Sequence record: NC_070962.1
Length of the DNA: 64,000 bases
Strand: one strand, 5' to 3'
Each line of letters opens with the position of its first letter. The stretch's first letter is position 1. The notes under the pieces were generated by a model. The model was given only the letters and a program-made list of their open reading frames with translations. It had not been told where the DNA came from and did no database searches. The translations under genes and the position numbers were made by a program. Shown piece after piece: positions 490 to 54,875 of the stretch.

Positions 490-3400
490 ATGAGCAAAGT
501 AATTTCCTCTAAATTTTTACCACAATCTTCTACAGGATCAACAAGTATTGTTTCTGTTAGTGGTAAAAGAATTACTGCGCTTTCTACAGATAAGAAAAAA
601 ATTAATTTTGAAAAATTTGTTGATGATGTTCAAGAAAAAGTATCTAAGAAAAAAACAACTGGTGGTTCTAATTTAAAATTGATTAATCATGAATTGATTA
701 TGATTAAAAAAACTCTTAGTAAAGAGAAAACAGAAGATAAAAAACAAAATGATGTCAAAAGAAAACTGAGGGAAAAAACAGGTAGAGAAAAACGAGAAAG
801 TAAATTAGAAAGTGGATTAAAGTTAGGAAAGATTGGGAAAAATATTGCTAGTTCATTAACATCAAATAGTATATTTGATGCGATTAAAAACTTTATAGGT
901 AATGTTCTTTTAGGTCGATTTGTTATATTTTTACTCGAAAATATTGATAAAGTATTTGAGTTTTTAAAATTTGTTGGTGGTGTTACCTCTTTCATATATG
1001 ATCTTGGCACTAAAGTATTTGGTGGTATTGTTGGACTGATTGAAGGTGCTTATGATATTAATGAAACTGTAAAGGGTGAGATTGAACGTGTTGGTGGAGA
1101 AAATGCAGGTAAAGAATATGACAAGTTTACTGGTGCATTTAATAAGTTTATAAATCTTGCAATTATTCTTGCAGCATCTGGAGTTCCTTTAAATCTTGGT
1201 GGAGGAAAAGATCCTTTAAAGAGAATACCAAAAGGAACTCTTAATCAGGCAGCAAAATCAGTATCAACAAGCACTAAACCTTTTGCTGGTTTTTCTAGAA
1301 CACCAGGAACATTTGGTGCAGGAAATCAAAGAAGTTCAATAGCAGAATATCTTAAGAGATCTAGAGCAGAAAAATTAATTGAAAGGAGATATGGTAACGC
1401 AGCTGCAATGCGTTATTCAAATGCATATAGAAATGCAATTGATGCTGGTAGATCTCCATCTCAAGCAGTAATAAGAGCAAAAGCAACACTACAAAGTTCA
1501 ATAAGAAAAGGTACTATTATAGCAAGACCTGCAGGATATGGTCTTCGTGGAGGAACACAGGCACGTGGACTGACTGGTGGTATTATGAGACGAGGAGTAG
1601 GACGGGCAGGTAGTCGTTTACAGACTCGTATACTAGGTCGTAGTGCAAGATTAGGTATTAATCGAGTGGGAATGCGTACAGCAAGTATGTATTCTCGTTA
1701 TATGAATAGTATGCTCGGAAGAATTCCCGTTCTCGGAGCACTACTAGTTGGTGTCAATACTTATTTTGAAGATGCTGATGGTGATGGTGAACCTGATAGA
1801 AAATTGGATAAAGCATTATTTAAGATGGGTGGTGCTGCCCTTGGTGGATTCTTGGGATCTTTTATTCCAATTCCATTTTTGGGAACAATGCTTGGATTGG
1901 CTGTTGGTGAATATGTTGGTGACTTATTTTATACTTTAATAAGAGGTGGTGGAGTAAATGCTGTTGGAGATAAACTTAAAAAGGATATTGAAAGACTTAT
2001 TAATGGTGTAGAACTAGCAAAAAACTGGTTGCTTAATGGAGTAGGAAATATTGCAAATGATAATAGATTTCCTACTAATATCGGTCTGTTTAGACAGGAA
2101 CAAGTTGAAGGAATGCTTGGATTTAAAATGGGTGCATGGCCAGCACTATTAAATCCACTTAACTTCAATTTATTTCAAAAACTTGATATCCTCAGACAAG
2201 CATTCTTAGTCGATAATAAAAAATCTTTACCTAACAATAAGCAACAAACTGGAAATAATAGAAATTCTAATCAATCAGGAAATAGAAGAAGTGTTACTGC
2301 ACAAACTCTTGGATTTACTCCAGCGCAAGTTAGGAATCTAAAAGCTATTACTCCTGGAGCAGTTCCAACATTAGCACAGTGGAAAGCAGCAGTAAAGGGA
2401 AGTATTTTTGAACCCGTAGCAGAGGAAGTATATAATACATGCATTAATGAAGGAATAAACCCAGCATTTATGTGGGGATTATCTGGTGCTGAACAGTCTC
2501 ACGTACCTTCCCTCAAAAATAATCCATGGAATTATGGTGTTAATAGTCAGATGACATTTCCTTCGTTGGCAGAGGGTGTGAAAGTTATTGCAAGAGCAAT
2601 TAGAGATCCTAATGGATATTATGTTGGAGAAGGACGCAGGACACTCGCAGCTATTATTGAACGATATACACCACATAATGTCCAAGGTAATAATACACCT
2701 CAGCATATTAAGAATATTATTAATATTGGAATTGAAACAAACGGAGATCCATCTACAGTATTACTTCCTTTAAATTATAAACCAGGAAATCAAGTTAGTC
2801 CAAGCACCTCATTATTACCTTCTATCGTTCAACCCGCAGGAACTATTCCACAATCAACCGTCCAAAATAATGGACAAAATGGAAGGTTGAAACAAAGTCA
2901 ATTGACTAGAGTTGGTCAATTATCTAGTTCACCAACTGGTGGTCCTTATTGGTATGGGAACGGTGCTTACTTGAAACATGAGGCAGCAAGATGGTTTATA
3001 AAAGCAAAACAAGCTGCTCAGAAAGAAGGTATATACTTTACAATTAATAGTGCATATAGAAGTTATGAGCATCAGCAAGCATTAGTTGGTAGGTATGCTG
3101 TAGTTGCTGCTCCTGGAACATCTGCTCATGGTTGGGGAACAGCACTTGATATTGAAGTAAATGGTGGATGGACTTGGTTGAAGGAGAATGGACCGAAGTA
3201 TGGGTGGCATTGGATGCAAATTCCAAATGATGATGTTCACTTTGAATACTTAGGACCTCCTACAATTGCTCCACAACAAGCACAACCTGCAGCAATTCCT
3301 CTTAATCCTAATACTGGTATGCCTCCAAATACTAGTAATTGGGGAACTGGAGGAGTAACTCCTGCAGGAACACGACCAATAACAAATAATCCTACAAGAC

Positions 3401-3885
3401 AAAGCTCTTTAAAAGCATCTCTAGATAGATTTTTTAAAGCTAAGCCTGGAAGTAATCATAAACTAATTGTTCCAGAATTGGGATTAATTTTAGTTAAAGG
3501 TGTGGGTTGGTTAGGAGGAAATCAAAGTCAAATATGGACAAGAAAACCAGGAGGAAAAAACTTTGAATTAGGTAAACTTATTTTTGGTGGTACTGACGAA
3601 GAAGTTAAAAATGAGATATACAAAAAATTAGAACAAAGGGGATTATTGACTGTACCAAAGGCAACACTTAGTCCTACACCACCAGTACCTGGTCAGAGAT
3701 ATGGTAAAAATGGTCAACCAGTATCATTTAACCCACAAATAAATAATACAAACAAAACACAACTGACAGCATCTTTAAGACAAACACCTTCTTATAACAC
3801 AAGAACCCTGGTTTATGTTCAACCAATAGAGACAATTATTGAAAAAGAAAATCAGAATACCGATCCATTAAGTTTCTTGGTATAA
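490..3885 (+). CDS. Large baseplate-hub/tape-measure-like virion protein with a lysozyme-fold (GH73-like) domain and an M15B (VanY-like) peptidase domain
   Basis: Lys-rich coiled N-terminus and hydrophobic Gly-rich helices. Glucosaminidase-like segment INPAFMWGLSGAE..NNPWNYG..TFPSLAEG. M15 motifs INSAYRSYEHQ, GTSAHGWGTALD and DDVHFEY. Baseplate gene context. Confidence 0.7.
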   Translation: MSKVISSKFLPQSSTGSTSIVSVSGKRITALSTDKKKINFEKFVDDVQEKVSKKKTTGGSNLKLINHELIMIKKTLSKEKTEDKKQNDVKRKLREKTGREKRESKLESGLKLGKIGKNIASSLTSNSIFDAIKNFIGNVLLGRFVIFLLENIDKVFEFLKFVGGVTSFIYDLGTKVFGGIVGLIEGAYDINETVKGEIERVGGENAGKEYDKFTGAFNKFINLAIILAASGVPLNLGGGKDPLKRIPKGTLNQAAKSVSTSTKPFAGFSRTPGTFGAGNQRSSIAEYLKRSRAEKLIERRYGNAAAMRYSNAYRNAIDAGRSPSQAVIRAKATLQSSIRKGTIIARPAGYGLRGGTQARGLTGGIMRRGVGRAGSRLQTRILGRSARLGINRVGMRTASMYSRYMNSMLGRIPVLGALLVGVNTYFEDADGDGEPDRKLDKALFKMGGAALGGFLGSFIPIPFLGTMLGLAVGEYVGDLFYTLIRGGGVNAVGDKLKKDIERLINGVELAKNWLLNGVGNIANDNRFPTNIGLFRQEQVEGMLGFKMGAWPALLNPLNFNLFQKLDILRQAFLVDNKKSLPNNKQQTGNNRNSNQSGNRRSVTAQTLGFTPAQVRNLKAITPGAVPTLAQWKAAVKGSIFEPVAEEVYNTCINEGINPAFMWGLSGAEQSHVPSLKNNPWNYGVNSQMTFPSLAEGVKVIARAIRDPNGYYVGEGRRTLAAIIERYTPHNVQGNNTPQHIKNIINIGIETNGDPSTVLLPLNYKPGNQVSPSTSLLPSIVQPAGTIPQSTVQNNGQNGRLKQSQLTRVGQLSSSPTGGPYWYGNGAYLKHEAARWFIKAKQAAQKEGIYFTINSAYRSYEHQQALVGRYAVVAAPGTSAHGWGTALDIEVNGGWTWLKENGPKYGWHWMQIPNDDVHFEYLGPPTIAPQQAQPAAIPLNPNTGMPPNTSNWGTGGVTPAGTRPITNNPTRQSSLKASLDRFFKAKPGSNHKLIVPELGLILVKGVGWLGGNQSQIWTRKPGGKNFELGKLIFGGTDEEVKNEIYKKLEQRGLLTVPKATLSPTPPVPGQRYGKNGQPVSFNPQINNTNKTQLTASLRQTPSYNTRTLVYVQPIETIIEKENQNTDPLSFLV

Positions 3886-45852: not shown

Positions 45853-46521
45853 ATGTCACATTTTCATCTTTATTCTGATCCACCTGAAGGAAACGTAGAG
45901 TATTTGATTCCAATGTTCTCTACTCCTCTTTTACATCTTAAAGTAGTAAATTGGGAAGAAAAAAAGGCAGAACTTCTCAAAATGTATGAAAATAGAAAAC
46001 AAGATCGATCCAGATTTAAAGTTGCAACTGGTAGTGAATTAAGTCTAGATGTTGAAACAGACTATCATCATAATCATGACACTGGAGAAACTTATGATGA
46101 AGACATCATGGATATTTTTCAGGAAGAACTAGAAACTCTTGCTGATACCTTCGAGTGTAGTGTTGATGTTTGTACCTCATGGTTTGAGAAAGCATCAAAA
46201 AGTAAGTTTCATCAGGTTCATAATCACGGATCACAAGGATTTAGTGCTGTATGTTTTGTTCAATTCGATGAAAAACATCACACACCAACAATTTTCCTTA
46301 ATCCAAATTTAGCAGATGTTGAAGTTTGTAATGTGATTCCACCAGGAATTAGAGAGGGATCACTTATCTTCTTCCCATCATATGTTTTACATTATACCGC
46401 ACCAAATGTAAGTGATGTTGATAGAATTATTCTATCATTTAATATCAATGCCGAGTATGAATCATTTACATTTGAGGAAGAAAGTCAGTTTGATTCCGAA
46501 TATGTAAACAACGATGTCTAA
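45853..46521 (+). CDS. Putative 2OG-Fe(II) oxygenase (HxH type)
   Basis: FHQVHNHG...LIFFPSYVLH..RIILSFN. Confidence 0.8.
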   Translation: MSHFHLYSDPPEGNVEYLIPMFSTPLLHLKVVNWEEKKAELLKMYENRKQDRSRFKVATGSELSLDVETDYHHNHDTGETYDEDIMDIFQEELETLADTFECSVDVCTSWFEKASKSKFHQVHNHGSQGFSAVCFVQFDEKHHTPTIFLNPNLADVEVCNVIPPGIREGSLIFFPSYVLHYTAPNVSDVDRIILSFNINAEYESFTFEEESQFDSEYVNNDV

Positions 46522-47077
46522 ATCATTTGTTCTTCGCAATTTCTTATTCGATCATGATGTAAAGCAATTAAATCAATGGACTCTCGATAATTGTCATCGA
46601 AAGATCTTTGAGGATGCTTGCATGGATCCTGACAATCCTGGAACAAGATTTACAACTCGGTTTCCAAATGAATCAGTTGCTCCTGATATAAATTATCCCA
46701 AATCTGCATTTGCAGTCAAGCAAAGAATTGTAGATTACTTTCATTTGAGACGATATAAAAATCCACCATCATACAGTCATGGCATTGTTAATGGTATAGG
46801 ATATGCTGGTGGAAGAATAGAAAATCATATTGATCCCACATACTATCCAAATACTAAAACTGTTCACTTCAATGCCATCACGCAGCAGGCATCTAGGGGT
46901 GGACATACTGTCATTGGTGGTGTAGAATATAATGATCTCAATCCTACAGATCTTCTAATTTACCAGGTATCTGAAATTCATCATGAAGTTACACCAACAG
47001 AAGGTAATATACCAAGAATACTGTGGGTGTTTGGTTTTTGTTTAGATGACATAAAAATAAAGGAGTTATTCTTATGA
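46514..47077 (+). CDS. Putative 2OG-Fe(II) oxygenase
   Basis: IENHID...GG...HHEVTP...RILWVFG. Confidence 0.78.
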   Translation: MSKSFVLRNFLFDHDVKQLNQWTLDNCHRKIFEDACMDPDNPGTRFTTRFPNESVAPDINYPKSAFAVKQRIVDYFHLRRYKNPPSYSHGIVNGIGYAGGRIENHIDPTYYPNTKTVHFNAITQQASRGGHTVIGGVEYNDLNPTDLLIYQVSEIHHEVTPTEGNIPRILWVFGFCLDDIKIKELFL

Positions 47078-47805
47078 TAGACCTGAGTAAAGATCCAACA
47101 TTGTTTGAGACTAATGATTTCTCAAACATGAATATCATTGAGTTTGTTGATGGTGATAGGGTATCTAATCTTTATTGGATGGATAATTTCTATAAAAGAC
47201 CTGATGATGTATATAACTATTTGCTTTCTATTGAACCACCATTATGGAAAGTAGGACCAGACTGGGAACTTGGTAGAGGAACACTCAACACCAAGTATTT
47301 TGAAGATCGTAGACATATGATGGAACATCCTGGCATATGCTCACTGTATGATAAGGTTTCTGATATTTGTGGTCAAGAACCATTGGACGATGAAATTGTT
47401 ACTAATTTCACAAGATTTTCCAGAGTAAGAGAGAACCCATACAAAACTCATTACTGGTGGCCTCATCATGATGGAGGATATAATGGTATTTGTTATCTCT
47501 CTAAGAAGGATGAAGTTGGCACAAACTTATATAAACCACTGATCACTGATGATCCTGAGATACTACCTTTGGATGAGAATGGTGGTGTGAGAGATGAACA
47601 TGCTATTCCGTGGACACCTAAAAACCTATGGGAAATTGTGGTGAGATTTAGATCGAAGTTTAATCGATTTGTAATGTTTGAAGGTTCATATTATTATCAC
47701 AGTATGGATCTAACTGGTAAAAATTATTTTGCAGATCATTTTAATGATGCAGAATTTAGAATCAATCAAGTATTTTTCTTCAAAAATCCAAGGGCACCAA
47801 GATAA
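47074..47805 (+). CDS. Putative 2OG-Fe(II) oxygenase-like protein
   Basis: WPHHD..GICYL..GT.LY...FNRFVMF...YHS...RINQVFF. Confidence 0.7.
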   Translation: MIDLSKDPTLFETNDFSNMNIIEFVDGDRVSNLYWMDNFYKRPDDVYNYLLSIEPPLWKVGPDWELGRGTLNTKYFEDRRHMMEHPGICSLYDKVSDICGQEPLDDEIVTNFTRFSRVRENPYKTHYWWPHHDGGYNGICYLSKKDEVGTNLYKPLITDDPEILPLDENGGVRDEHAIPWTPKNLWEIVVRFRSKFNRFVMFEGSYYYHSMDLTGKNYFADHFNDAEFRINQVFFFKNPRAPR

Positions 47806-48467
47806 TGACTGAACATAGATTTAGACCAGAGATAAGTCCAAATGATGATAATTTTGTTGCATATGAAGTTTCTTCAAGGGATCGATTAGATTTATTTGTA
47901 ACACCATTTTATGACTATAAACTGGGATTAAATAATCAAGAAATTGTAGATGAATGTTTTAATCTAAAAGAAAAGTATCCAAATGGAGTTAAAAAATCCA
48001 ATTTTGGTGATGGTTGGCAAAGTCAAGTATATGAATTAGCAACAATTAGAAGAGGAATGATCCCAGCAATTCAAAATCTTGCTAGGAACGTGATTGATCT
48101 CACAAACGATATGCTTGAGGATTGTCATTCTGGTAAATCAGTGAATGATAATGAAATTGGTTGGTGGATTAACATTAACAAAGGGATGGGATATAATGTA
48201 TATCATACACATCCTGGTTGTTCTGTAATTGGACTATATTATCCTATGGTTCCAGAAAATATGGGTGATCAAGAAGGACTTCTTACACTACTGAGATCTG
48301 ATCCTTCAAGTCATAATGAAGCATTTGCTGATATTGAAGGGCATTGTGAGTGGGTTATTAGACCAGAAGTTGGAAGACTTTATCTGATGCCTTCTACTAT
48401 TGCTCATTATGTAACTCCTCATTTTAGTGATCAGGAGAGAATATCCATTGCATTTAATATTGGATAA
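47805..48467 (+). CDS. Putative 2OG-Fe(II) oxygenase (HxH type)
   Basis: YNVYHTHPG...PSTIAHYVTP...RISIAFN. Confidence 0.8.
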   Translation: MTEHRFRPEISPNDDNFVAYEVSSRDRLDLFVTPFYDYKLGLNNQEIVDECFNLKEKYPNGVKKSNFGDGWQSQVYELATIRRGMIPAIQNLARNVIDLTNDMLEDCHSGKSVNDNEIGWWININKGMGYNVYHTHPGCSVIGLYYPMVPENMGDQEGLLTLLRSDPSSHNEAFADIEGHCEWVIRPEVGRLYLMPSTIAHYVTPHFSDQERISIAFNIG

Positions 48468-48470
48468 ATA
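48464..48470 (+). promoter_or_regulatory. Late promoter ATAAATA
   Basis: Directly upstream of the collar-domain genes, marking them as late (structural). Confidence 0.7.
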
Positions 48471-48504
48471 ATACACGTTATCTGTTGTTAGTAATTGGTA
48501 TAAT

Positions 48505-49041
48505 ATGTCTATTTTACAAACGAGTGGTATACAATTTGGTTCTGACAATACCATTCTAAACTCTAAGTATGGTATTATTCCTCAAAATAGTAAAGCAGTA
48601 TTTTATCAAGCAAATGCTCCTACTGGATGGACAAAAGTAACTACACATAATAATAAAGCACTTAGAGTTGTATCTGGAACTGGTGGTGGATATGGTTCTG
48701 GTGGAACTGCTGGTCCTGGTGGACAACCATTCTCGACAATTTTTCCCACCAGTGTTCGTCCAATTAGTGGAACTGTAACTGCTGCTGGTACTGTAAATGC
48801 GACAACATTGACAATTCAACAAATTCCTGGACACACACATAATGCAGGTTCTCAAGTTAATGTCAGTCCTGGATCTCCTGGTATTGGTGGACGTGCTGTA
48901 AATGCTCAAGCACCAGCAACATCACCAACTGGAGGTGGAGGTTCTCATACTCACCCATTTGGTGGAAGTGCATCACCATATAGTGGAACTATTGACATGA
49001 GAGTTCAATATATTGATGTCATCATTTGTAACTTCACTTGA
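48505..49041 (+). CDS. Short tail-collar/needle-type fibre protein
   Basis: FYQANAPTGWTK..HNNKALRVV collar motif, two HTH motifs 35 aa apart, C-terminal RVQYIDVIIC. Confidence 0.75.
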   Translation: MSILQTSGIQFGSDNTILNSKYGIIPQNSKAVFYQANAPTGWTKVTTHNNKALRVVSGTGGGYGSGGTAGPGGQPFSTIFPTSVRPISGTVTAAGTVNATTLTIQQIPGHTHNAGSQVNVSPGSPGIGGRAVNAQAPATSPTGGGGSHTHPFGGSASPYSGTIDMRVQYIDVIICNFT

Positions 49042-49051
49042 GGTATAATGT

Positions 49052-50317
49052 ATGTCAATTTTAAGAGCAGACGGACTTAGATTTGGTAATGGAACTGAAT
49101 TAACAAGTTTTTATGGAATTGTTCCACAATCTTCCACGATGGTGTTTTATCAAGCATCAGCACCAACTGGGTGGACTAAATCTACAACACATGATAATAA
49201 AGCGCTTAGAGTTGTAGATGGAACTGGTGCAGGATCTGGTGGTTTAATTTCCTTCACAGATATATTCAATGATTCTACAGGTGCAGAAGCAGATCTTTCA
49301 GCAACACTTTCAGGTTCTGTAGGTGGTCATACTTTAACGGAAGCAGAGATTCCTGCACATACTCATAACACTGGAAGTAATCCTAATTCATATAGATCTT
49401 CTGCTGGTTCTTCACCATTCAGAACCGATAACAGACAACCACGTGGATATAATATCAGAGCAATAACAAGAACTGTTCAAAACAATAGGGTTATTGTTAA
49501 TTTTAGACAACCAGTTAATGTAAGACAACCTCGTAACTATAGGCAACCAAGAAGACAGAGAGTTCCACTCAGACAGAGACAACCTAGGAACTTTAGGGTT
49601 AGGTATCCTACACGTTCTAGAGCACCATTTAACTTCCGTGCTCCTGTTCCTTTCCGTGTTCCATTAAGATCTAGAGCACCATTTAACTTCCGTGCTGATG
49701 TAGGAAGAAGTAGAAGACCAATTCCTTTCTCTTTCCGTGCATCTATTAGAAATAATGATAGATTCCCAAGAAGAAGAGGTGGAAGACGTAGGAGAAACGA
49801 TAGAGAACCAAGAAGAGCAGATAGAAGACAACCAAGAAACTCTGGTTGGAGACAAAGAAGACAACTTAGACAACCTAGATCTGCTAGACAGAGAAGGTCA
49901 TTCCGTCAACCTCGTAACTTCAGACAACCTAGAGCAGCAAGACAGAGGAGATCATTCAGGGTAAGACAACCAAGAACATTTAGAGTGAGATATTCATTCA
50001 GACAGAGAAATTCTTATCGTGTGAATATTCCGTTCAGAGCAGTAGTTCCACAGAGAAATCCTGCATCTTATAGACAACCAAGATCATATCGTGTACCACA
50101 AAGATACCCACAAACTAGCAGTGTGAGAGTATCGCAGAGAGTTTTAACTCCTGGTGGTACAATCAGAGCAAATAATACTCAAGCACCAGCAACATCACCA
50201 AGTGGTGGTGGTCAATCACATAATCATCCATTTACTGGATCTCCAATATCATGGGTTGCTTCATTGTCACCATTGAGAGTACAATACATCGACGTGATTC
50301 TTTGCAGTTTGGACTGA
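49052..50317 (+). CDS. Tail-collar/needle-type fibre protein with a ~240-aa Arg-rich insertion
   Basis: N- and C-termini are colinear with 48505..49041 (FYQASAPTGWTK; HTH at aa 103-105; HNH at aa 390-392; RVQYIDVILC). The interior is RQPR-type repeats. Confidence 0.75.
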   Translation: MSILRADGLRFGNGTELTSFYGIVPQSSTMVFYQASAPTGWTKSTTHDNKALRVVDGTGAGSGGLISFTDIFNDSTGAEADLSATLSGSVGGHTLTEAEIPAHTHNTGSNPNSYRSSAGSSPFRTDNRQPRGYNIRAITRTVQNNRVIVNFRQPVNVRQPRNYRQPRRQRVPLRQRQPRNFRVRYPTRSRAPFNFRAPVPFRVPLRSRAPFNFRADVGRSRRPIPFSFRASIRNNDRFPRRRGGRRRRNDREPRRADRRQPRNSGWRQRRQLRQPRSARQRRSFRQPRNFRQPRAARQRRSFRVRQPRTFRVRYSFRQRNSYRVNIPFRAVVPQRNPASYRQPRSYRVPQRYPQTSSVRVSQRVLTPGGTIRANNTQAPATSPSGGGQSHNHPFTGSPISWVASLSPLRVQYIDVILCSLD

Positions 50318-50320
50318 TCA

Positions 50321-50334
50321 TGCTATAATAAATA
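50321..50334 (+). promoter_or_regulatory. Overlapping extended -10 (TGcTATAAT) and late (ATAAATA) promoter
   Basis: Sequence TGCTATAATAAATA immediately after the Arg-rich gene and before 50354. Confidence 0.55.
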
Positions 50335-50353
50335 ATACACTGAATTTCATCTT

Positions 50354-50740
50354 ATGACTAAATCATCTGGCAAGTGGTGTCCACTTATTAAAAAAGATTG
50401 TGTTGAACATAAGTGTGCTTGGTACACACATATCGCAGGAGTAGATCCTAACACTGGAAATGCAGTAGATCATTGGTCTTGTGCAGTACAATGGATGCCA
50501 ATGTTAATGATTGAAAATAGTCAACAACAACGTCAAACTGGTTCTGCTGTTGAGTCTTTCCGTAATGAAATGGTGAAAGCAAATGACAGCAATCAGCAAA
50601 TGTTAGATGCTGTTGGTAACATGTATCTTGATATGTGTGAAGCACAAGGTGTTAATGTTTCCGAATATATTGAACAAATCGAAGGCATAGATAATACAGA
50701 AGAAAACTTACTACCAGAGTCCAACGAGGAGCAACAATGA
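50354..50740 (+). CDS. Cys-rich accessory protein of the collar-fibre cassette
   Basis: WCPLIKKDC...KCAW...WSCA (four Cys), followed by a helical and acidic tail. Confidence 0.7.
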   Translation: MTKSSGKWCPLIKKDCVEHKCAWYTHIAGVDPNTGNAVDHWSCAVQWMPMLMIENSQQQRQTGSAVESFRNEMVKANDSNQQMLDAVGNMYLDMCEAQGVNVSEYIEQIEGIDNTEENLLPESNEEQQ

Positions 50741-52074
50741 GAATTTCTATTATTCCAGAAGATAAGAAAATTATCGTAGATGGTAAGACTGTTGATCTTG
50801 AGGATGATGCACCTTGGGATTTTGATGATGAACCTATTCATGCAATTCAGTGGAGAGATGGTAGAGGTGAATTAGAATATGAGGATGTTCCTGGTGAAGA
50901 TCCTTTACCGAATAAGATTTTTGGTGATGATGAATTTGATACTATTGTTCAACCATACTTAGATTATTTTAATAGTTTCCTCACAGTCTATGAGCAAAGA
51001 CAACTTGCTGCTGCATTAGCAGAAGAAGAAAATCTTGCTGCTCAGATTGAAGAATTAAATCTTGATAAACTAGAAAAAGAAGCACAGTTGGTTATCATTG
51101 ATGATCTTCAGAGACAAAATAAAGAACTTCGTGATGAAAGAGAAGAACTGTATAATGAAAAATCTAGACTTGAACAAGCAAAAGTTTTTGATGAACAAAC
51201 TTCTTTGATGGAACTTCAAAGAGAACAGGCAGCAAGAGAATCAGAAAGAGCAGGACTTGAAGCACAAAAAGCAGAAGAATTTTTTGAAAAGAAATCTTTA
51301 GAACTTGCTAAGAAGTATGATGAACTCTTCCATGACTTTGAGAAAGAGAAGGAAGCATTTATTGAAGAGAGGAAGCAGTATCAAGAACTGCTTCAGATGG
51401 AACGTGACAAGATGGAACGTGAACTTGAAGAAAGTGAAAAAGGCATTCTTCTAGAGGATAAAGAAAGAGCACAAAAAGAGGAGATGCTAGAGAAAGTCAG
51501 GTTGCTTGAAGAAGAGCAACTTGAAATTACAAAGGCAGAACTTGAAATGCAAAAAGAAGGTCTTCATGTTCAATGGCAAAATGCTGAATGGGAACTTGAA
51601 GAGATTCGACGTGAAAGAGATAAAATTCGCATGGAGTTTGAGGAAGAGAAAAAAAGATTCGATAAACAAGTTGATCAAGAACTTGATGTTATCATGAGAT
51701 CTCATGAAGATGTTCTTGCTAAGTTAGATAATGAACAGTATTATGATGAACTTGATGATGCTCTAGAGAAAGAATTTGACAAAGCAGAGAAAGAATATAG
51801 AGATAGTCAGAGAGAAAAACTTAAGGCATCTCAGGCAAATACTTTTGCTTCTGAGTTGAGTGATCTTTCTAAAGAGAGTGCCGATAGAGAAGAAATTGAG
51901 AAAGGTCAAAATTATTCTATTGATGACATTCTAACTCTCATGGATGAAATTGATCCTGAGAAATTATACACAACTCTTACATCAGAAGAAAGGAAAGATA
52001 ATGAACTTCCTGTAGATAAAGCAGTTAAATGGTTCTCTGCCCTTAAAGATGTTCTAGATAAAAATAACAACTAA
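50737..52074 (+). CDS. Fibre-assembly-chaperone-like N-terminal domain fused to a long acidic coiled coil
   Basis: N-terminal MRISIIPEDK.I.VDG...IHAIQW.DG.GELEY. From about aa 85 it is a heptad-like Glu-rich helix. Hand count 130 D/E versus 68 K/R. Confidence 0.6.
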   Translation: MRISIIPEDKKIIVDGKTVDLEDDAPWDFDDEPIHAIQWRDGRGELEYEDVPGEDPLPNKIFGDDEFDTIVQPYLDYFNSFLTVYEQRQLAAALAEEENLAAQIEELNLDKLEKEAQLVIIDDLQRQNKELRDEREELYNEKSRLEQAKVFDEQTSLMELQREQAARESERAGLEAQKAEEFFEKKSLELAKKYDELFHDFEKEKEAFIEERKQYQELLQMERDKMERELEESEKGILLEDKERAQKEEMLEKVRLLEEEQLEITKAELEMQKEGLHVQWQNAEWELEEIRRERDKIRMEFEEEKKRFDKQVDQELDVIMRSHEDVLAKLDNEQYYDELDDALEKEFDKAEKEYRDSQREKLKASQANTFASELSDLSKESADREEIEKGQNYSIDDILTLMDEIDPEKLYTTLTSEERKDNELPVDKAVKWFSALKDVLDKNNN

Positions 52075-52080
52075 TATGGT

Positions 52081-53442
52081 ATGAAAGATGAATTGATGAA
52101 GAACAACTATCTGGTTGTTCCTGGTTTTATTGATGCTGATCATGCCAAAAGATTAGAGGATGAGTTTTTTGTAACAGATGCAAAGTTTAATTTTAATGGT
52201 GATGAACAAGCACCAAACTCTGCATCTGTTTGGAATTATCTTCCAGCACTAGAACTTCTCACTAACAAGACATCTCATGTGAGTGAACTTGTTGGTGAAA
52301 CTGTTTTGCCAACGTACACTTATTCCAGAATCTATCGCAATGGAAGTGTTCTTGCAAAACATACAGATCGTCCAGCATGTGAAGTTTCTATGACTCTACA
52401 TTTGGGTGGTGATGTACCTTGGGCAATTTGGATTGAAACACCAGAGGGTGAAAAAAGATGTGTATCTTTGAATCCTGGTGATGCTATGCTATACTTGGGA
52501 TGTGTTGCTCCACATTGGAGAGATAGATTTACTGGTGAACACTATACACAGTTCTTTTTACACTATGTGAGAAGCAGAGGAATGTATGGTGCTGCATTTT
52601 TTGATCAAGAACGTGATGTAATTGAAGACCACGAAAGTTTATTAGAGGAGTATGATGACATGAGAAATAGACTAGAACATTCCAATCCAAGAGCAATTCT
52701 ACCTAAAAAGTATAGAGAAAAACAGCAAGGTAGTATTGACATTGTAAAAGTTGATAACAATGATGAAGGGTTTGTCGATTTTGATAATGTTGTAATTGCT
52801 AATTCAAAGTATGAAAAGTTTCTGAAGAAGAAAGATACACCAGAGATTGTAAATTCCAGTGCCAATAAATTGAGTGTAAAGAAACTGGAAGATTTTATCT
52901 GGCATGGTGAAGAGTTTATTGATCCTGAATTTTGTGATAAACTTCTAGAAGAATATGCACCAACAAATTATTGGGAACCAACACTAACTGGAAGTGGTCA
53001 TGATCCAGATGCAAGACGTTGTGAGATGATTCCTATTTCTGATCAAGGAATTATAGAAGAAAATAATACAGAAGAGAGAAAGGAATTAGATGAATATCTT
53101 TTTAATGTCGTGAAAGATATTATTGAAGATTATCAAAAAATGCACCCTGAGTTTGAACTAGAAGTTCAAGAAGATAGTGGATATGAGTTACTAAAATATG
53201 AAGTTGGTGACTTTTATATTCAGCACAGTGATTCTTTCAAGGAGCAACCTAGAGCATTGACTGTTATTATGTCAATGAATGATGGTTATGAAGGTGGTGA
53301 AGTTGCACTCTTTAATCGTGAGTTAGTATACAAACTTGGTGCTGGTGATATTCTAGTGTTCCCATCAAACTTCATGTATCCACATGAAATTATGCCAGTG
53401 ACTTCTGGAACTAGATATTCTATCATCACCTGGATTGTATGA
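52081..53442 (+). CDS. Tandem two-domain 2OG-Fe(II) oxygenase
   Basis: Domain 1: LAKHTDRPACE..PHWR. Domain 2: YIQHSD...GG...PHEIMPV..RYSIITW. Confidence 0.88.
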   Translation: MKDELMKNNYLVVPGFIDADHAKRLEDEFFVTDAKFNFNGDEQAPNSASVWNYLPALELLTNKTSHVSELVGETVLPTYTYSRIYRNGSVLAKHTDRPACEVSMTLHLGGDVPWAIWIETPEGEKRCVSLNPGDAMLYLGCVAPHWRDRFTGEHYTQFFLHYVRSRGMYGAAFFDQERDVIEDHESLLEEYDDMRNRLEHSNPRAILPKKYREKQQGSIDIVKVDNNDEGFVDFDNVVIANSKYEKFLKKKDTPEIVNSSANKLSVKKLEDFIWHGEEFIDPEFCDKLLEEYAPTNYWEPTLTGSGHDPDARRCEMIPISDQGIIEENNTEERKELDEYLFNVVKDIIEDYQKMHPEFELEVQEDSGYELLKYEVGDFYIQHSDSFKEQPRALTVIMSMNDGYEGGEVALFNRELVYKLGAGDILVFPSNFMYPHEIMPVTSGTRYSIITWIV

Positions 53443-54092
53443 AACATAATGATTTTATTGGTGTTTATCCAGATTCACTAGATAAACAAACTTGTGATTA
53501 TATTATTCAATATTTTGAAGATAATTATAAACACCCTGATGATCCAAATTGTAAAATAAAAGCAGGATGTGGTTCACATGAAACTGAGAGAGGTCATCTT
53601 ACCCGTCATGATTATCAATGGTATCTAAATTTAGATGATCCTGCTGCATCTCTTATTGCACAAGTTGTTGATCATTGTTGGAGGAAATATGTTGAAAGAT
53701 TCTGGGTTGCTGATTACATAAGCACATCTTTTGAGGAAGTAAAACTTCAGAAAACACCACCAAGAGGTGGATTTCATGATTGGCATTGTGAAATCAATGA
53801 TTTAGGTGTTGTTGACAGATGTGTTGCTTGGATGTTATATTTGAATGACATTCCTGAAGGTGAAGGTGAAACTGAGTTCCTTTGGCAAGGTCTTAGAGTA
53901 CAACCAAAAGCAGGAACGTTGTTAATTTGGCCCGCATTTTTTACTCATACTCATCGAGGAAATCCTGTTTATTCATGTGATAAGTATATTGCAACAGGAT
54001 GGGGTTTATATGAACCAAATGAAGATGTCGCACTTGTTGATGTTTTTAATTGGGATGATGACAAAAAAATCTTTACTGGAAGAAAAAACTAA
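53439..54092 (+). CDS. 2OG-Fe(II) oxygenase (HxE variant)
   Basis: FHDWHCE...MLYLND..GETEF...THTHRG..KYIATGW. Confidence 0.88.
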   Translation: MKHNDFIGVYPDSLDKQTCDYIIQYFEDNYKHPDDPNCKIKAGCGSHETERGHLTRHDYQWYLNLDDPAASLIAQVVDHCWRKYVERFWVADYISTSFEEVKLQKTPPRGGFHDWHCEINDLGVVDRCVAWMLYLNDIPEGEGETEFLWQGLRVQPKAGTLLIWPAFFTHTHRGNPVYSCDKYIATGWGLYEPNEDVALVDVFNWDDDKKIFTGRKN

Positions 54093-54307
54093 TGGCACTA
54101 TCAGATCAAGTTAAAGACGAATTAGACTCTGCTTCAACACATCTTCGTGAAGCACTAGCATTTGCTGCAAGAAATGAAAAACCTTTTGTTATTAAAGCAT
54201 TGGGTGAAATGGTTCATGCTTTGGATCAACTATCATCCGCAGATGAGTTCATGGATACTATGCAAGAATTGATGAAGGAGCAAGAAGATGGACTATCAGA
54301 TTTTTAA
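54092..54307 (+). CDS. Small helical hypothetical protein
   Basis: Overlap-coupled to its neighbours on both sides. Confidence 0.7.
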   Translation: MALSDQVKDELDSASTHLREALAFAARNEKPFVIKALGEMVHALDQLSSADEFMDTMQELMKEQEDGLSDF

Positions 54308-54875
54308 TGATCCATTTCCTTATGTTATCATAAATGATACATTTAATTCGGGTGAACTTGAGTTAATTTGGAGAGAAATTGATTTTTTAGAACCAAAACT
54401 AAGAGAACCTGAAGGTTTTTTTGCTGCGGCAAATGAAACAGGGGAATATATTACAAATTCCAAAGGATTGTCCTTAGATGATACCTATGGAAATCGTGAT
54501 TGTTCTGATATTTTAACTATAACCAGATCAATTTTCTTTCATAATACTGAATTGTACGATGATTTGAGTAAATCTAGTGACTATTGGGTAACATGGACAA
54601 AATCAAATTCGGATTATACTAAACTTAGGAAGTATTCACCTGGACAAGGATATAATCCACATTCAGATACTTGGGTAAATGTGTTAATTTCAACCACATT
54701 GTATAAAGAAGAAGGAAGTGGTGGTGATTTATATTTCCCTTATCATGATCTGACAATAGAAACTAAAAACAATCAAACTGTTATTTTTCCTGGATGGGTA
54801 GAACATGCTGTACTAGATGTTGAAGATAATGACAGATATGCTGTAACGATATTTGTACACTGTGCCAGTTCTTGA
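54288..54875 (+). CDS. 2OG-Fe(II) oxygenase
   Basis: YNPHSD...GGDL...FPGWVEHAV...RYAVT. Confidence 0.85.
   Translation: MDYQIFNDPFPYVIINDTFNSGELELIWREIDFLEPKLREPEGFFAAANETGEYITNSKGLSLDDTYGNRDCSDILTITRSIFFHNTELYDDLSKSSDYWVTWTKSNSDYTKLRKYSPGQGYNPHSDTWVNVLISTTLYKEEGSGGDLYFPYHDLTIETKNNQTVIFPGWVEHAVLDVEDNDRYAVTIFVHCASS

Follow-up and report, generated by a model that had tools for sequence, protein, structure and literature searches.

The window analysed here, a stretch of 64,000 nucleotides (NC_070962.1), is the last 64 kb of the record of Synechococcus phage S-SCSM1 (MK867354.2, Kyanoviridae; 100% identity). It contains SSCSM1_247, a gene annotated in GenBank as 'hypothetical protein', for which the BLAST table of the S-SCSM1 authors gives no database match (ORF247). 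Two genes upstream lies SSCSM1_245, annotated as 'short tail fiber protein', whose product carries a long arginine-rich insertion; the intervening gene, SSCSM1_246, encodes a small cysteine-containing (Cys) protein. The original prediction, made from the sequence without database searches, had described the SSCSM1_247 product as a chaperone-like protein whose acidic extension nearly neutralises that insertion. Here we show that, in the lineage of S-SCSM1, such proteins have exchanged their usual short helical C-terminus for an acidic helix of ~290 residues and a conserved end domain, and that this long form is limited to cassettes in which the adjacent tip paralogue has a polycationic, probably disordered insertion of 240–340 residues.

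Composition and predicted anatomy of SSCSM1_247

Translation of SSCSM1_247 gives 45 Asp, 85 Glu, 42 Lys and 26 Arg residues and hence a net charge of −62, in exact agreement with the earlier tally by hand (130 D/E versus 68 K/R). The value of about +69 proposed for the insertion two genes upstream was likewise reproduced, over 249 residues. Per residue, the net charge of SSCSM1_247 is −0.139, compared with a mean of −0.040 ± 0.057 for the 41 long open reading frames (ORFs) of the window. By charge density it is the third most acidic protein of the window and the most acidic among those longer than 250 residues, and several window proteins reach net charges of −76 to −86. SSCSM1_245, at +0.154 per residue, is a clear outlier among the same 41 ORFs. 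The observation is therefore real: the acidity of the target is marked but not unique, and the arginine-rich protein is the true outlier. The only other strongly basic protein of the window by net charge is encoded by an ORF at 490-3885 (1131 residues, net +63).

The SSCSM1_247 monomer was modelled with AlphaFold2 from an alignment of 26 homologues. In the model, a beta domain (residues 1–62) and a short helix are followed by one unbroken, straight helix of ~290 residues (72–363) with a predicted local distance difference test (pLDDT) score above 90; after a low-confidence stretch (364–394), the chain ends in a three-helix C-terminal domain (395–443). Modelled alone with 49 diverse homologues, the N-terminal domain (N-domain) reached a pLDDT of 95.7. 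The N-domain and the long Glu-rich helix of the original prediction were thus recovered; the ~330 residues it had allotted to the helix were too many, and the C-terminal domain had been overlooked. Just −37 of the total charge of −62 is held by the helix, the rest falling on the other parts of the protein (Table 1).

Hydrophobic residues make up 28% of the helix and Lys or Arg 15%, and pairs of opposite charge at i/i+4 spacing occur in excess. The occupancy of heptad a/d positions is only slightly raised with respect to shuffled sequences (z = 2.3), and the periods of 3.6 and 7 residues are each equalled in 2% of shuffles. Because the heptad signal is weak, a coiled coil, as the helix had been labelled from the sequence, is plausible. 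A poly-acidic tract of the kind found in nucleoplasmin was ruled out, the longest run of D/E in SSCSM1_247 being three residues.

In the family alignment, conservation extends over the N-domain and the initial half of the helix and returns in the C-terminal domain, which contains invariant columns and ranks among the best conserved regions. The distal half of the helix drifts in sequence while keeping almost the same length.

The fibre-tip module and the distribution of the long form

Loci were collected by exact protein look-up and pattern scans, and their ORFs were classified by searches seeded with the proteins of the window. A recurrent module emerged, consisting of at least one fibre gene ending in an HxH tip domain, a gene for the Cys protein and a gene for an N-domain protein. 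Its order is kept in 46 distinct cassettes, plus isolates, from cyanomyoviruses to a roseophage podovirus. In P-SSM2, the series runs from PSSM2_028 ('phage tail fiber-like protein') through PSSM2_029 and PSSM2_030 to piuC, and in Roseobacter phage CRP-361 from gp39 through gp40 to gp41, the last annotated as 'tail assembly chaperone protein'. A Ralstonia phage has the tip and Cys genes of the module, with the Cys gene after the tip gene.

The composition of these cassettes separates cleanly by the presence of the insertion. In 32 of the 46, a tip paralogue bearing such a basic insertion is present (net charge +28 to +87), and the N-domain protein has 440–502 residues and a net charge of −27 to −72. 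In the other 14, which lack the insertion, the N-domain protein has 83–258 residues without exception, as had been forecast for homologues beside insertion-less fibres. The long form is therefore found in 32/32 cassettes with the insertion versus 0/14 without it, and it is the long rod, together with its end domain, whose occurrence follows that of the insertion.

Full-length homologues of SSCSM1_247 (n = 48) have 440–470 residues, with identities down to 36%, and come from metagenomes only. When residues 1–95 were compared by phmmer with 1.84 billion representative proteins, 74 matches were obtained, mostly of 72–200 residues; another group, of 420–491 residues, is likewise built from an N-domain, a helix and a C-terminal domain. 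Nearly all of the short N-domain proteins are acidic. Among the N-domain homologues, P0077 and P0082 bear PF16778 (Phage_tail_APC), and P0090, P0106 and P0117 bear DUF4376. The family phrog_4912 ('tail fiber assembly') aligns to residues 3–173 of P0077 and 16–185 of P0082, in both cases spanning the N-domain, and gp41 of CRP-361 was found by iterated local search (E = 4 × 10−18). The description of SSCSM1_247 as chaperone-like is supported because its N-domain is homologous to that of tail-fibre assembly proteins and its position in the module is conserved.

Other searches returned little. Neither the whole of SSCSM1_247 nor its C-terminal 64 residues gave a Pfam match even at E ≤ 10, no PHROG match was obtained for the protein, and a profile search of PDB sequences yielded weak matches of the coiled-coil type and nothing useful. 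We also ran tblastn on 50,697 phage records, using as queries the N-domain, the complete protein and a pair of distant long homologues; apart from S-SCSM1 itself, only a weak match to CRP-361 gp41 emerged. The C-terminal domain, used as a separate query, had no stand-alone homologue, and its profile is unrelated to that of the APC domain (hhalign probability 0.2%). In the literature we found no description of the SSCSM1_247 family and no paper mentioning an arginine-rich cyanophage tail fibre.

In a fold search of BFVD, the N-domain model matched uncharacterised viral proteins only. One of them, A0A8S5MY66 (404 residues, Myoviridae sp. ctWaE18), has the N-domain fold (E = 2.7 × 10−6, 30% identity) and could be an independent long form. 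In two very large proteins, P0103 (1826 residues) and P0113 (1322 residues), the first ~45 residues of the N-domain were matched four and seven times, respectively; the beta hairpins that open the domain may also be used as repeats.

The bounds of the insertion in SSCSM1_245 were set by comparison with the paralogue SSCSM1_244, and the insertion sits between the two HxH motifs of SSCSM1_245. Searched as a profile, the short tip paralogues match tail-fibre chains of solved structure (9qgo_A, E = 1.7 × 10−10), and the S-SCSM1 authors matched ORF245 to the C-terminal domain of T4 gp12 by HHpred (supplement of PMC9602691). At one locus (L004 5167-7560), three consecutive tip paralogues comprise two short ones and an insertion-bearing one, which shows that duplication in the cassette has recurred.

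Table 1. Features of the fibre-tip cassette and of the SSCSM1_247 protein, with window coordinates.
Feature	Position	Strand	Description
SSCSM1_244, insertion-less tip paralogue	48505..49041	+	178 aa; annotated 'tail fiber protein (virion protein)'
SSCSM1_245, HxH fibre-tip paralogue	49052..50317	+	421 aa, net +65, 81 Arg
Arg-rich insertion of SSCSM1_245	49442..50188	+	residues 131-379, 249 aa, 30% Arg, net +69
SSCSM1_246, Cys-containing protein	50354..50740	+	128 aa, net −12; stop overlaps the SSCSM1_247 start by 4 nt
SSCSM1_247	50737..52074	+	445 aa, net −62; N-domain, long acidic helix, linker, C-terminal domain
N-terminal beta domain	50737..50946	+	residues 1-70, net −15; common to tail-fibre assembly proteins
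Single long helix	50950..51825	+	residues 72-363, net −37, 23% Glu
Linker	51826..51918	+	residues 364-394, net −4; low AlphaFold2 confidence, probably disordered
C-terminal domain	51919..52071	+	residues 395-445, net −6; small, helical, conserved
2OG-Fe(II) oxygenase (PF13640)	52081..53442	+	453 aa; directly downstream of the module
Motif ATAAATAATACA	50328..50339	+	26 nt before the start of the Cys gene; kept throughout the short-insertion clade
Motif ATAAATAATACA, second exact copy	48464..48475	+	upstream of the 244/245 gene pair
Motif ATAAATAATACA, further exact copy	3739-3750		just upstream of a gene start

The Cys proteins of the module form a family of ~100–130 residues in which four Cys and the C-terminal half are conserved. 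The family is very large (4769 clusters, all without annotation). Its genes adjoin those of N-domain proteins in cyanomyoviruses and in the roseophage podovirus, usually between the fibre and N-domain genes; loci besides the window include L091 5001-5324, L092 3977-4288 and L093 3977-4288. The 4-nt overlap between the stop of the Cys gene and the start of SSCSM1_247 is also present in relatives.

Downstream, a 2-oxoglutarate (2OG)-Fe(II) oxygenase gene follows the module in cyanomyovirus cassettes wherever the contig reaches beyond it, and P-SSM2 has piuC in this place. Seven such genes flank the fibre-tip cassette of S-SCSM1 (window 45853-48467 and 52081-54875), and modification of fibre proteins by the products of these genes is a possibility.

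The motif ATAAATAATACA, allowing one mismatch, has 7 copies in the window compared with 1.2 expected. It was read from the window sequence itself, and the copy before the Cys gene is kept in related metagenomic cassettes; it looks like a T4-type late promoter and is listed as a candidate. A generic scan for sigma-70 promoters and terminators gave results at chance level, and an 8-base late-promoter consensus had fewer matches than chance and was not used as evidence.

Function of the acidic rod

We consider it most likely that SSCSM1_247 is a fibre-assembly or accessory factor with a conserved docking domain, in which the oligomerising part has been exchanged for a long acidic rod. The more specific reading that we prefer, with a probability of roughly 45%, is that the protein is a non-virion accessory factor of the small HxH tail-fibre tip module and that its rod shields the insertion. 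By the modular logic of Tfa-type proteins, the N-domain would dock on the tip domain of the fibre whose gene lies just upstream. The rod, which is acidic and probably forms oligomers, would lie along the Arg-rich loops during folding of the tip trimer and so prevent their adhesion to nucleic acids or to one another; afterwards the rod protein would stay behind or be no more than a minor component of the particle. Electrostatic shielding of this kind is plausible. In favour of this reading we count, besides the charge figures below, the N-domain homology, the conserved gene order, the tail-fibre matches of the short paralogues, the restriction of the long form to insertion cassettes, the 4-nt overlap with the Cys gene, the promoter-like motif ahead of that gene pair and the lack of a virion mark on 245–247. 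That the acidic rod is a charge-matched helper, which arose on the docking domain together with the 240–340-residue polycationic insertion and was sized to it, is a tentative proposal that we would sooner doubt than affirm.

In the 32 insertion cassettes, the net charges of the two proteins sum to +4.3 ± 9.9, and the raw correlation between the charges is r = −0.78 and that between the lengths r = 0.93, a longer rod accompanying a longer insertion at the level of clades. Independent contrasts were calculated after removal of near-identical loci, whose near-zero branch lengths distort the result. For charge they gave r0 = −0.57, or −0.48 without the root contrast, and 16 contrasts had opposite signs versus 6 with the same sign. 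Co-variation in length was not counted as independent evidence because a single between-clade contrast carries nearly all of it.

Several results weigh against shielding by a matched charge. The insertion cassettes form two clades, and the tree fits a single gain. Within the long-insertion clade the charges are uncorrelated (r = −0.1); across cassettes the ratio of the two charges spans 0.54 to 1.41, and for the helix alone the contrasts fall to r0 = −0.40 (−0.27 without the root contrast). Moreover, control proteins vary with the fibre charge in the same way: the Cys protein at r = −0.81, the short paralogue at +0.81 and the last 300 residues of the oxygenase at −0.64. As these controls co-vary as strongly as the rod, charge co-variation was dropped as rod-specific evidence. 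The original prediction is partly supported; its idea of neutralisation is weakened by the controls, by the spread of the ratio and by the apparent single origin.

A further point on the same side comes from an outgroup, the L039-type cassettes (L039 4505-6777; also L040-L043), in which both of two tip paralogues are insertion-less. Their N-domain protein, a short helix followed by a D/E-rich and probably disordered tail, has 258 residues, a single Arg and a net charge of −54, with no insertion nearby. Strong acidity is thus older than the insertion, or independent of it. Equally long acidic extensions beside fibres that lack a basic insertion had been named at the outset as an observation that would count against neutralisation; the L039 type comes close to this, but its extension is not equally long.

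Other features of the protein also count against this reading. The tight length of the full-length homologues (440–449 residues at identities as low as 36%) and the conserved C-terminal domain fit a ruler or adaptor role that goes beyond the needs of a polyanion, and on these grounds we argue that the extension is more than a polyanion. The heptad signal is weak, and in a Foldseek search of the PDB the N-domain model matched the fold of no solved chaperone (none at E ≤ 0.001; the best hit, at E = 1.1, was an unrelated protein). Finally, the Pfam search found no PF16778 domain in SSCSM1_247; because this domain defines the PF16778 family, SSCSM1_247 is not a member of it, and its own family is best filed as a variant of tail-fibre assembly proteins outside PF16778.

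The alternative that we rate highest keeps the assembly or accessory factor and takes the near-equality of charge as incidental. The helix would then serve for oligomerisation or spacing only, and the acidity would reflect the ordinary composition of a helical rod, an acidic phage proteome and a drift of the lineage towards more charged proteins. The co-variation of the control proteins fits this explanation, as do the acidic average of the window proteome (−0.040 per residue, with several proteins at −76 to −86), the ordinary charge density of about −0.07 per residue in the long-insertion clade, the acidity of the L039-type homologue and that of nearly all short N-domain proteins; against it stand the perfect association of the long form with the insertion (32/32 versus 0/14), the charge sums near zero across cassettes and the excess of contrasts with opposite signs. 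We regard it as somewhat unlikely.

A second alternative, which we hold to be unlikely, is that SSCSM1_247 itself belongs to the virion as a structural rod, comparable to a fibre shaft or to a whisker of the fibritin type, and bears the shaft-less HxH tip proteins of 170–190 residues. In this arrangement, improbable to the same degree, the N-domain would hold the tip and the C-terminal domain would anchor the rod to the baseplate or neck. The succession of an N-terminal domain, a ~290-residue helix and a small conserved C-terminal domain fits such a rod, and the length of the protein is strictly kept although the sequence of the mid-helix drifts, which points the same way. The tip paralogues themselves are nearly devoid of a shaft, and long fibres (379–997 residues) pair with short N-domain proteins; against this, fibres of only 201–272 residues still pair with N-domain proteins of 83–91 residues. 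Neither Fibritin_C nor any other structural family was matched in Pfam or PHROG, and the homologous N-domain is found in annotated assembly chaperones.

The composition of the particle also bears on this point. Mass spectrometry of S-SCSM1 virions, as one tryptic data set, is described in PMC9602691, and in the GenBank marks derived from virion mass spectrometry 244 is a virion protein, whereas 245, 246 and 247 are unmarked. SSCSM1_247 should give many tryptic peptides, and the missing mark therefore speaks against a structural rod; resting on one tryptic data set, it falls short of proof. As for SSCSM1_245, trypsin would shred its insertion, yet the flanking domains should yield peptides.

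A function unrelated to the fibre, for example that of a host-directed or DNA-associated helical protein, is highly improbable: the full-length protein has no sequence match in Pfam, PHROG or the PDB and lies in a block rich in 2OG oxygenases of unknown role, but the synteny with fibre tips is kept across very different phages, and fibre assembly proteins have a homologous N-domain.

Tail-fibre tips decide host attachment in cyanophages, and the helper proteins of these fibres are poorly known outside a few model phages. The present analysis defines an unannotated docking domain that many fibre-assembly proteins have in common; a module of three genes, for the fibre tip, the Cys protein and the N-domain protein, in very different marine and soil phages; and a lineage in which fibre tip and helper have both gained large, oppositely charged additions. 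If these additions interact, as they would in a shielding accessory factor, they would constitute a natural viral case of electrostatic chaperoning of a disordered polycation. Such shielding would make it understandable that a particle carries, or a cell tolerates, a protein with ~70 excess positive charges per chain; it would also be a viral counterpart to the chaperoning of histones and protamines, and a new route to a highly cationic host-contact surface. If there is no interaction, the family is still a useful marker for the annotation of fibre modules in cyanophage metagenomes.

Comparison with known systems

The closest relatives of SSCSM1_247 are the PF16778/phrog_4912 proteins, such as CRP-361 gp41 and PSSM2_030. 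They have a homologous N-terminal beta domain, occupy the same slot after an HxH-tip fibre gene and a Cys protein, and are also acidic. SSCSM1_247 differs from them in lacking PF16778, in being 3 to 5 times longer and in having a ~290-residue helix and an unrelated conserved C-terminal domain.

Fibritin (wac) of T4 attaches by an N-terminal domain, continues as a long helical rod and ends in a small C-terminal domain; it aids the attachment of the long fibres. Its size and layout are similar to those of SSCSM1_247, which differs in having no Fibritin_C domain (Pfam), weak heptads and no mark as a virion protein. Another T4 protein, gp57A, is a very small, all-helical, non-virion helper that has no beta domain and is needed for the short fibre of the gp12 type. 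The S-SCSM1 authors matched ORF245 by HHpred to the C-terminal domain of gp12 (PMC9602691); no homology between gp57A and SSCSM1_247 was detected.

In Mu Tfa and gp25 of cyanophage Pam3, the N-terminal beta domain binds the distal fibre and the C-terminal helices oligomerise (PMC9608196). SSCSM1_247 has a similar modular plan, with an N-terminal beta-rich domain and a C-terminal helical part, the latter longer by an order of magnitude; it shows neither a sequence match of the Caudo_TAP type nor a Foldseek match in the PDB.

In comparison with nucleoplasmin and prothymosin-alpha, SSCSM1_247 has no Pfam match to their families and no poly-D/E tracts, and its acidic residues are placed on a helix that also holds 15% K/R. 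Only the principle is common to these proteins and SSCSM1_247, namely an acidic partner that is encoded, or acts, beside a highly basic, probably disordered client.

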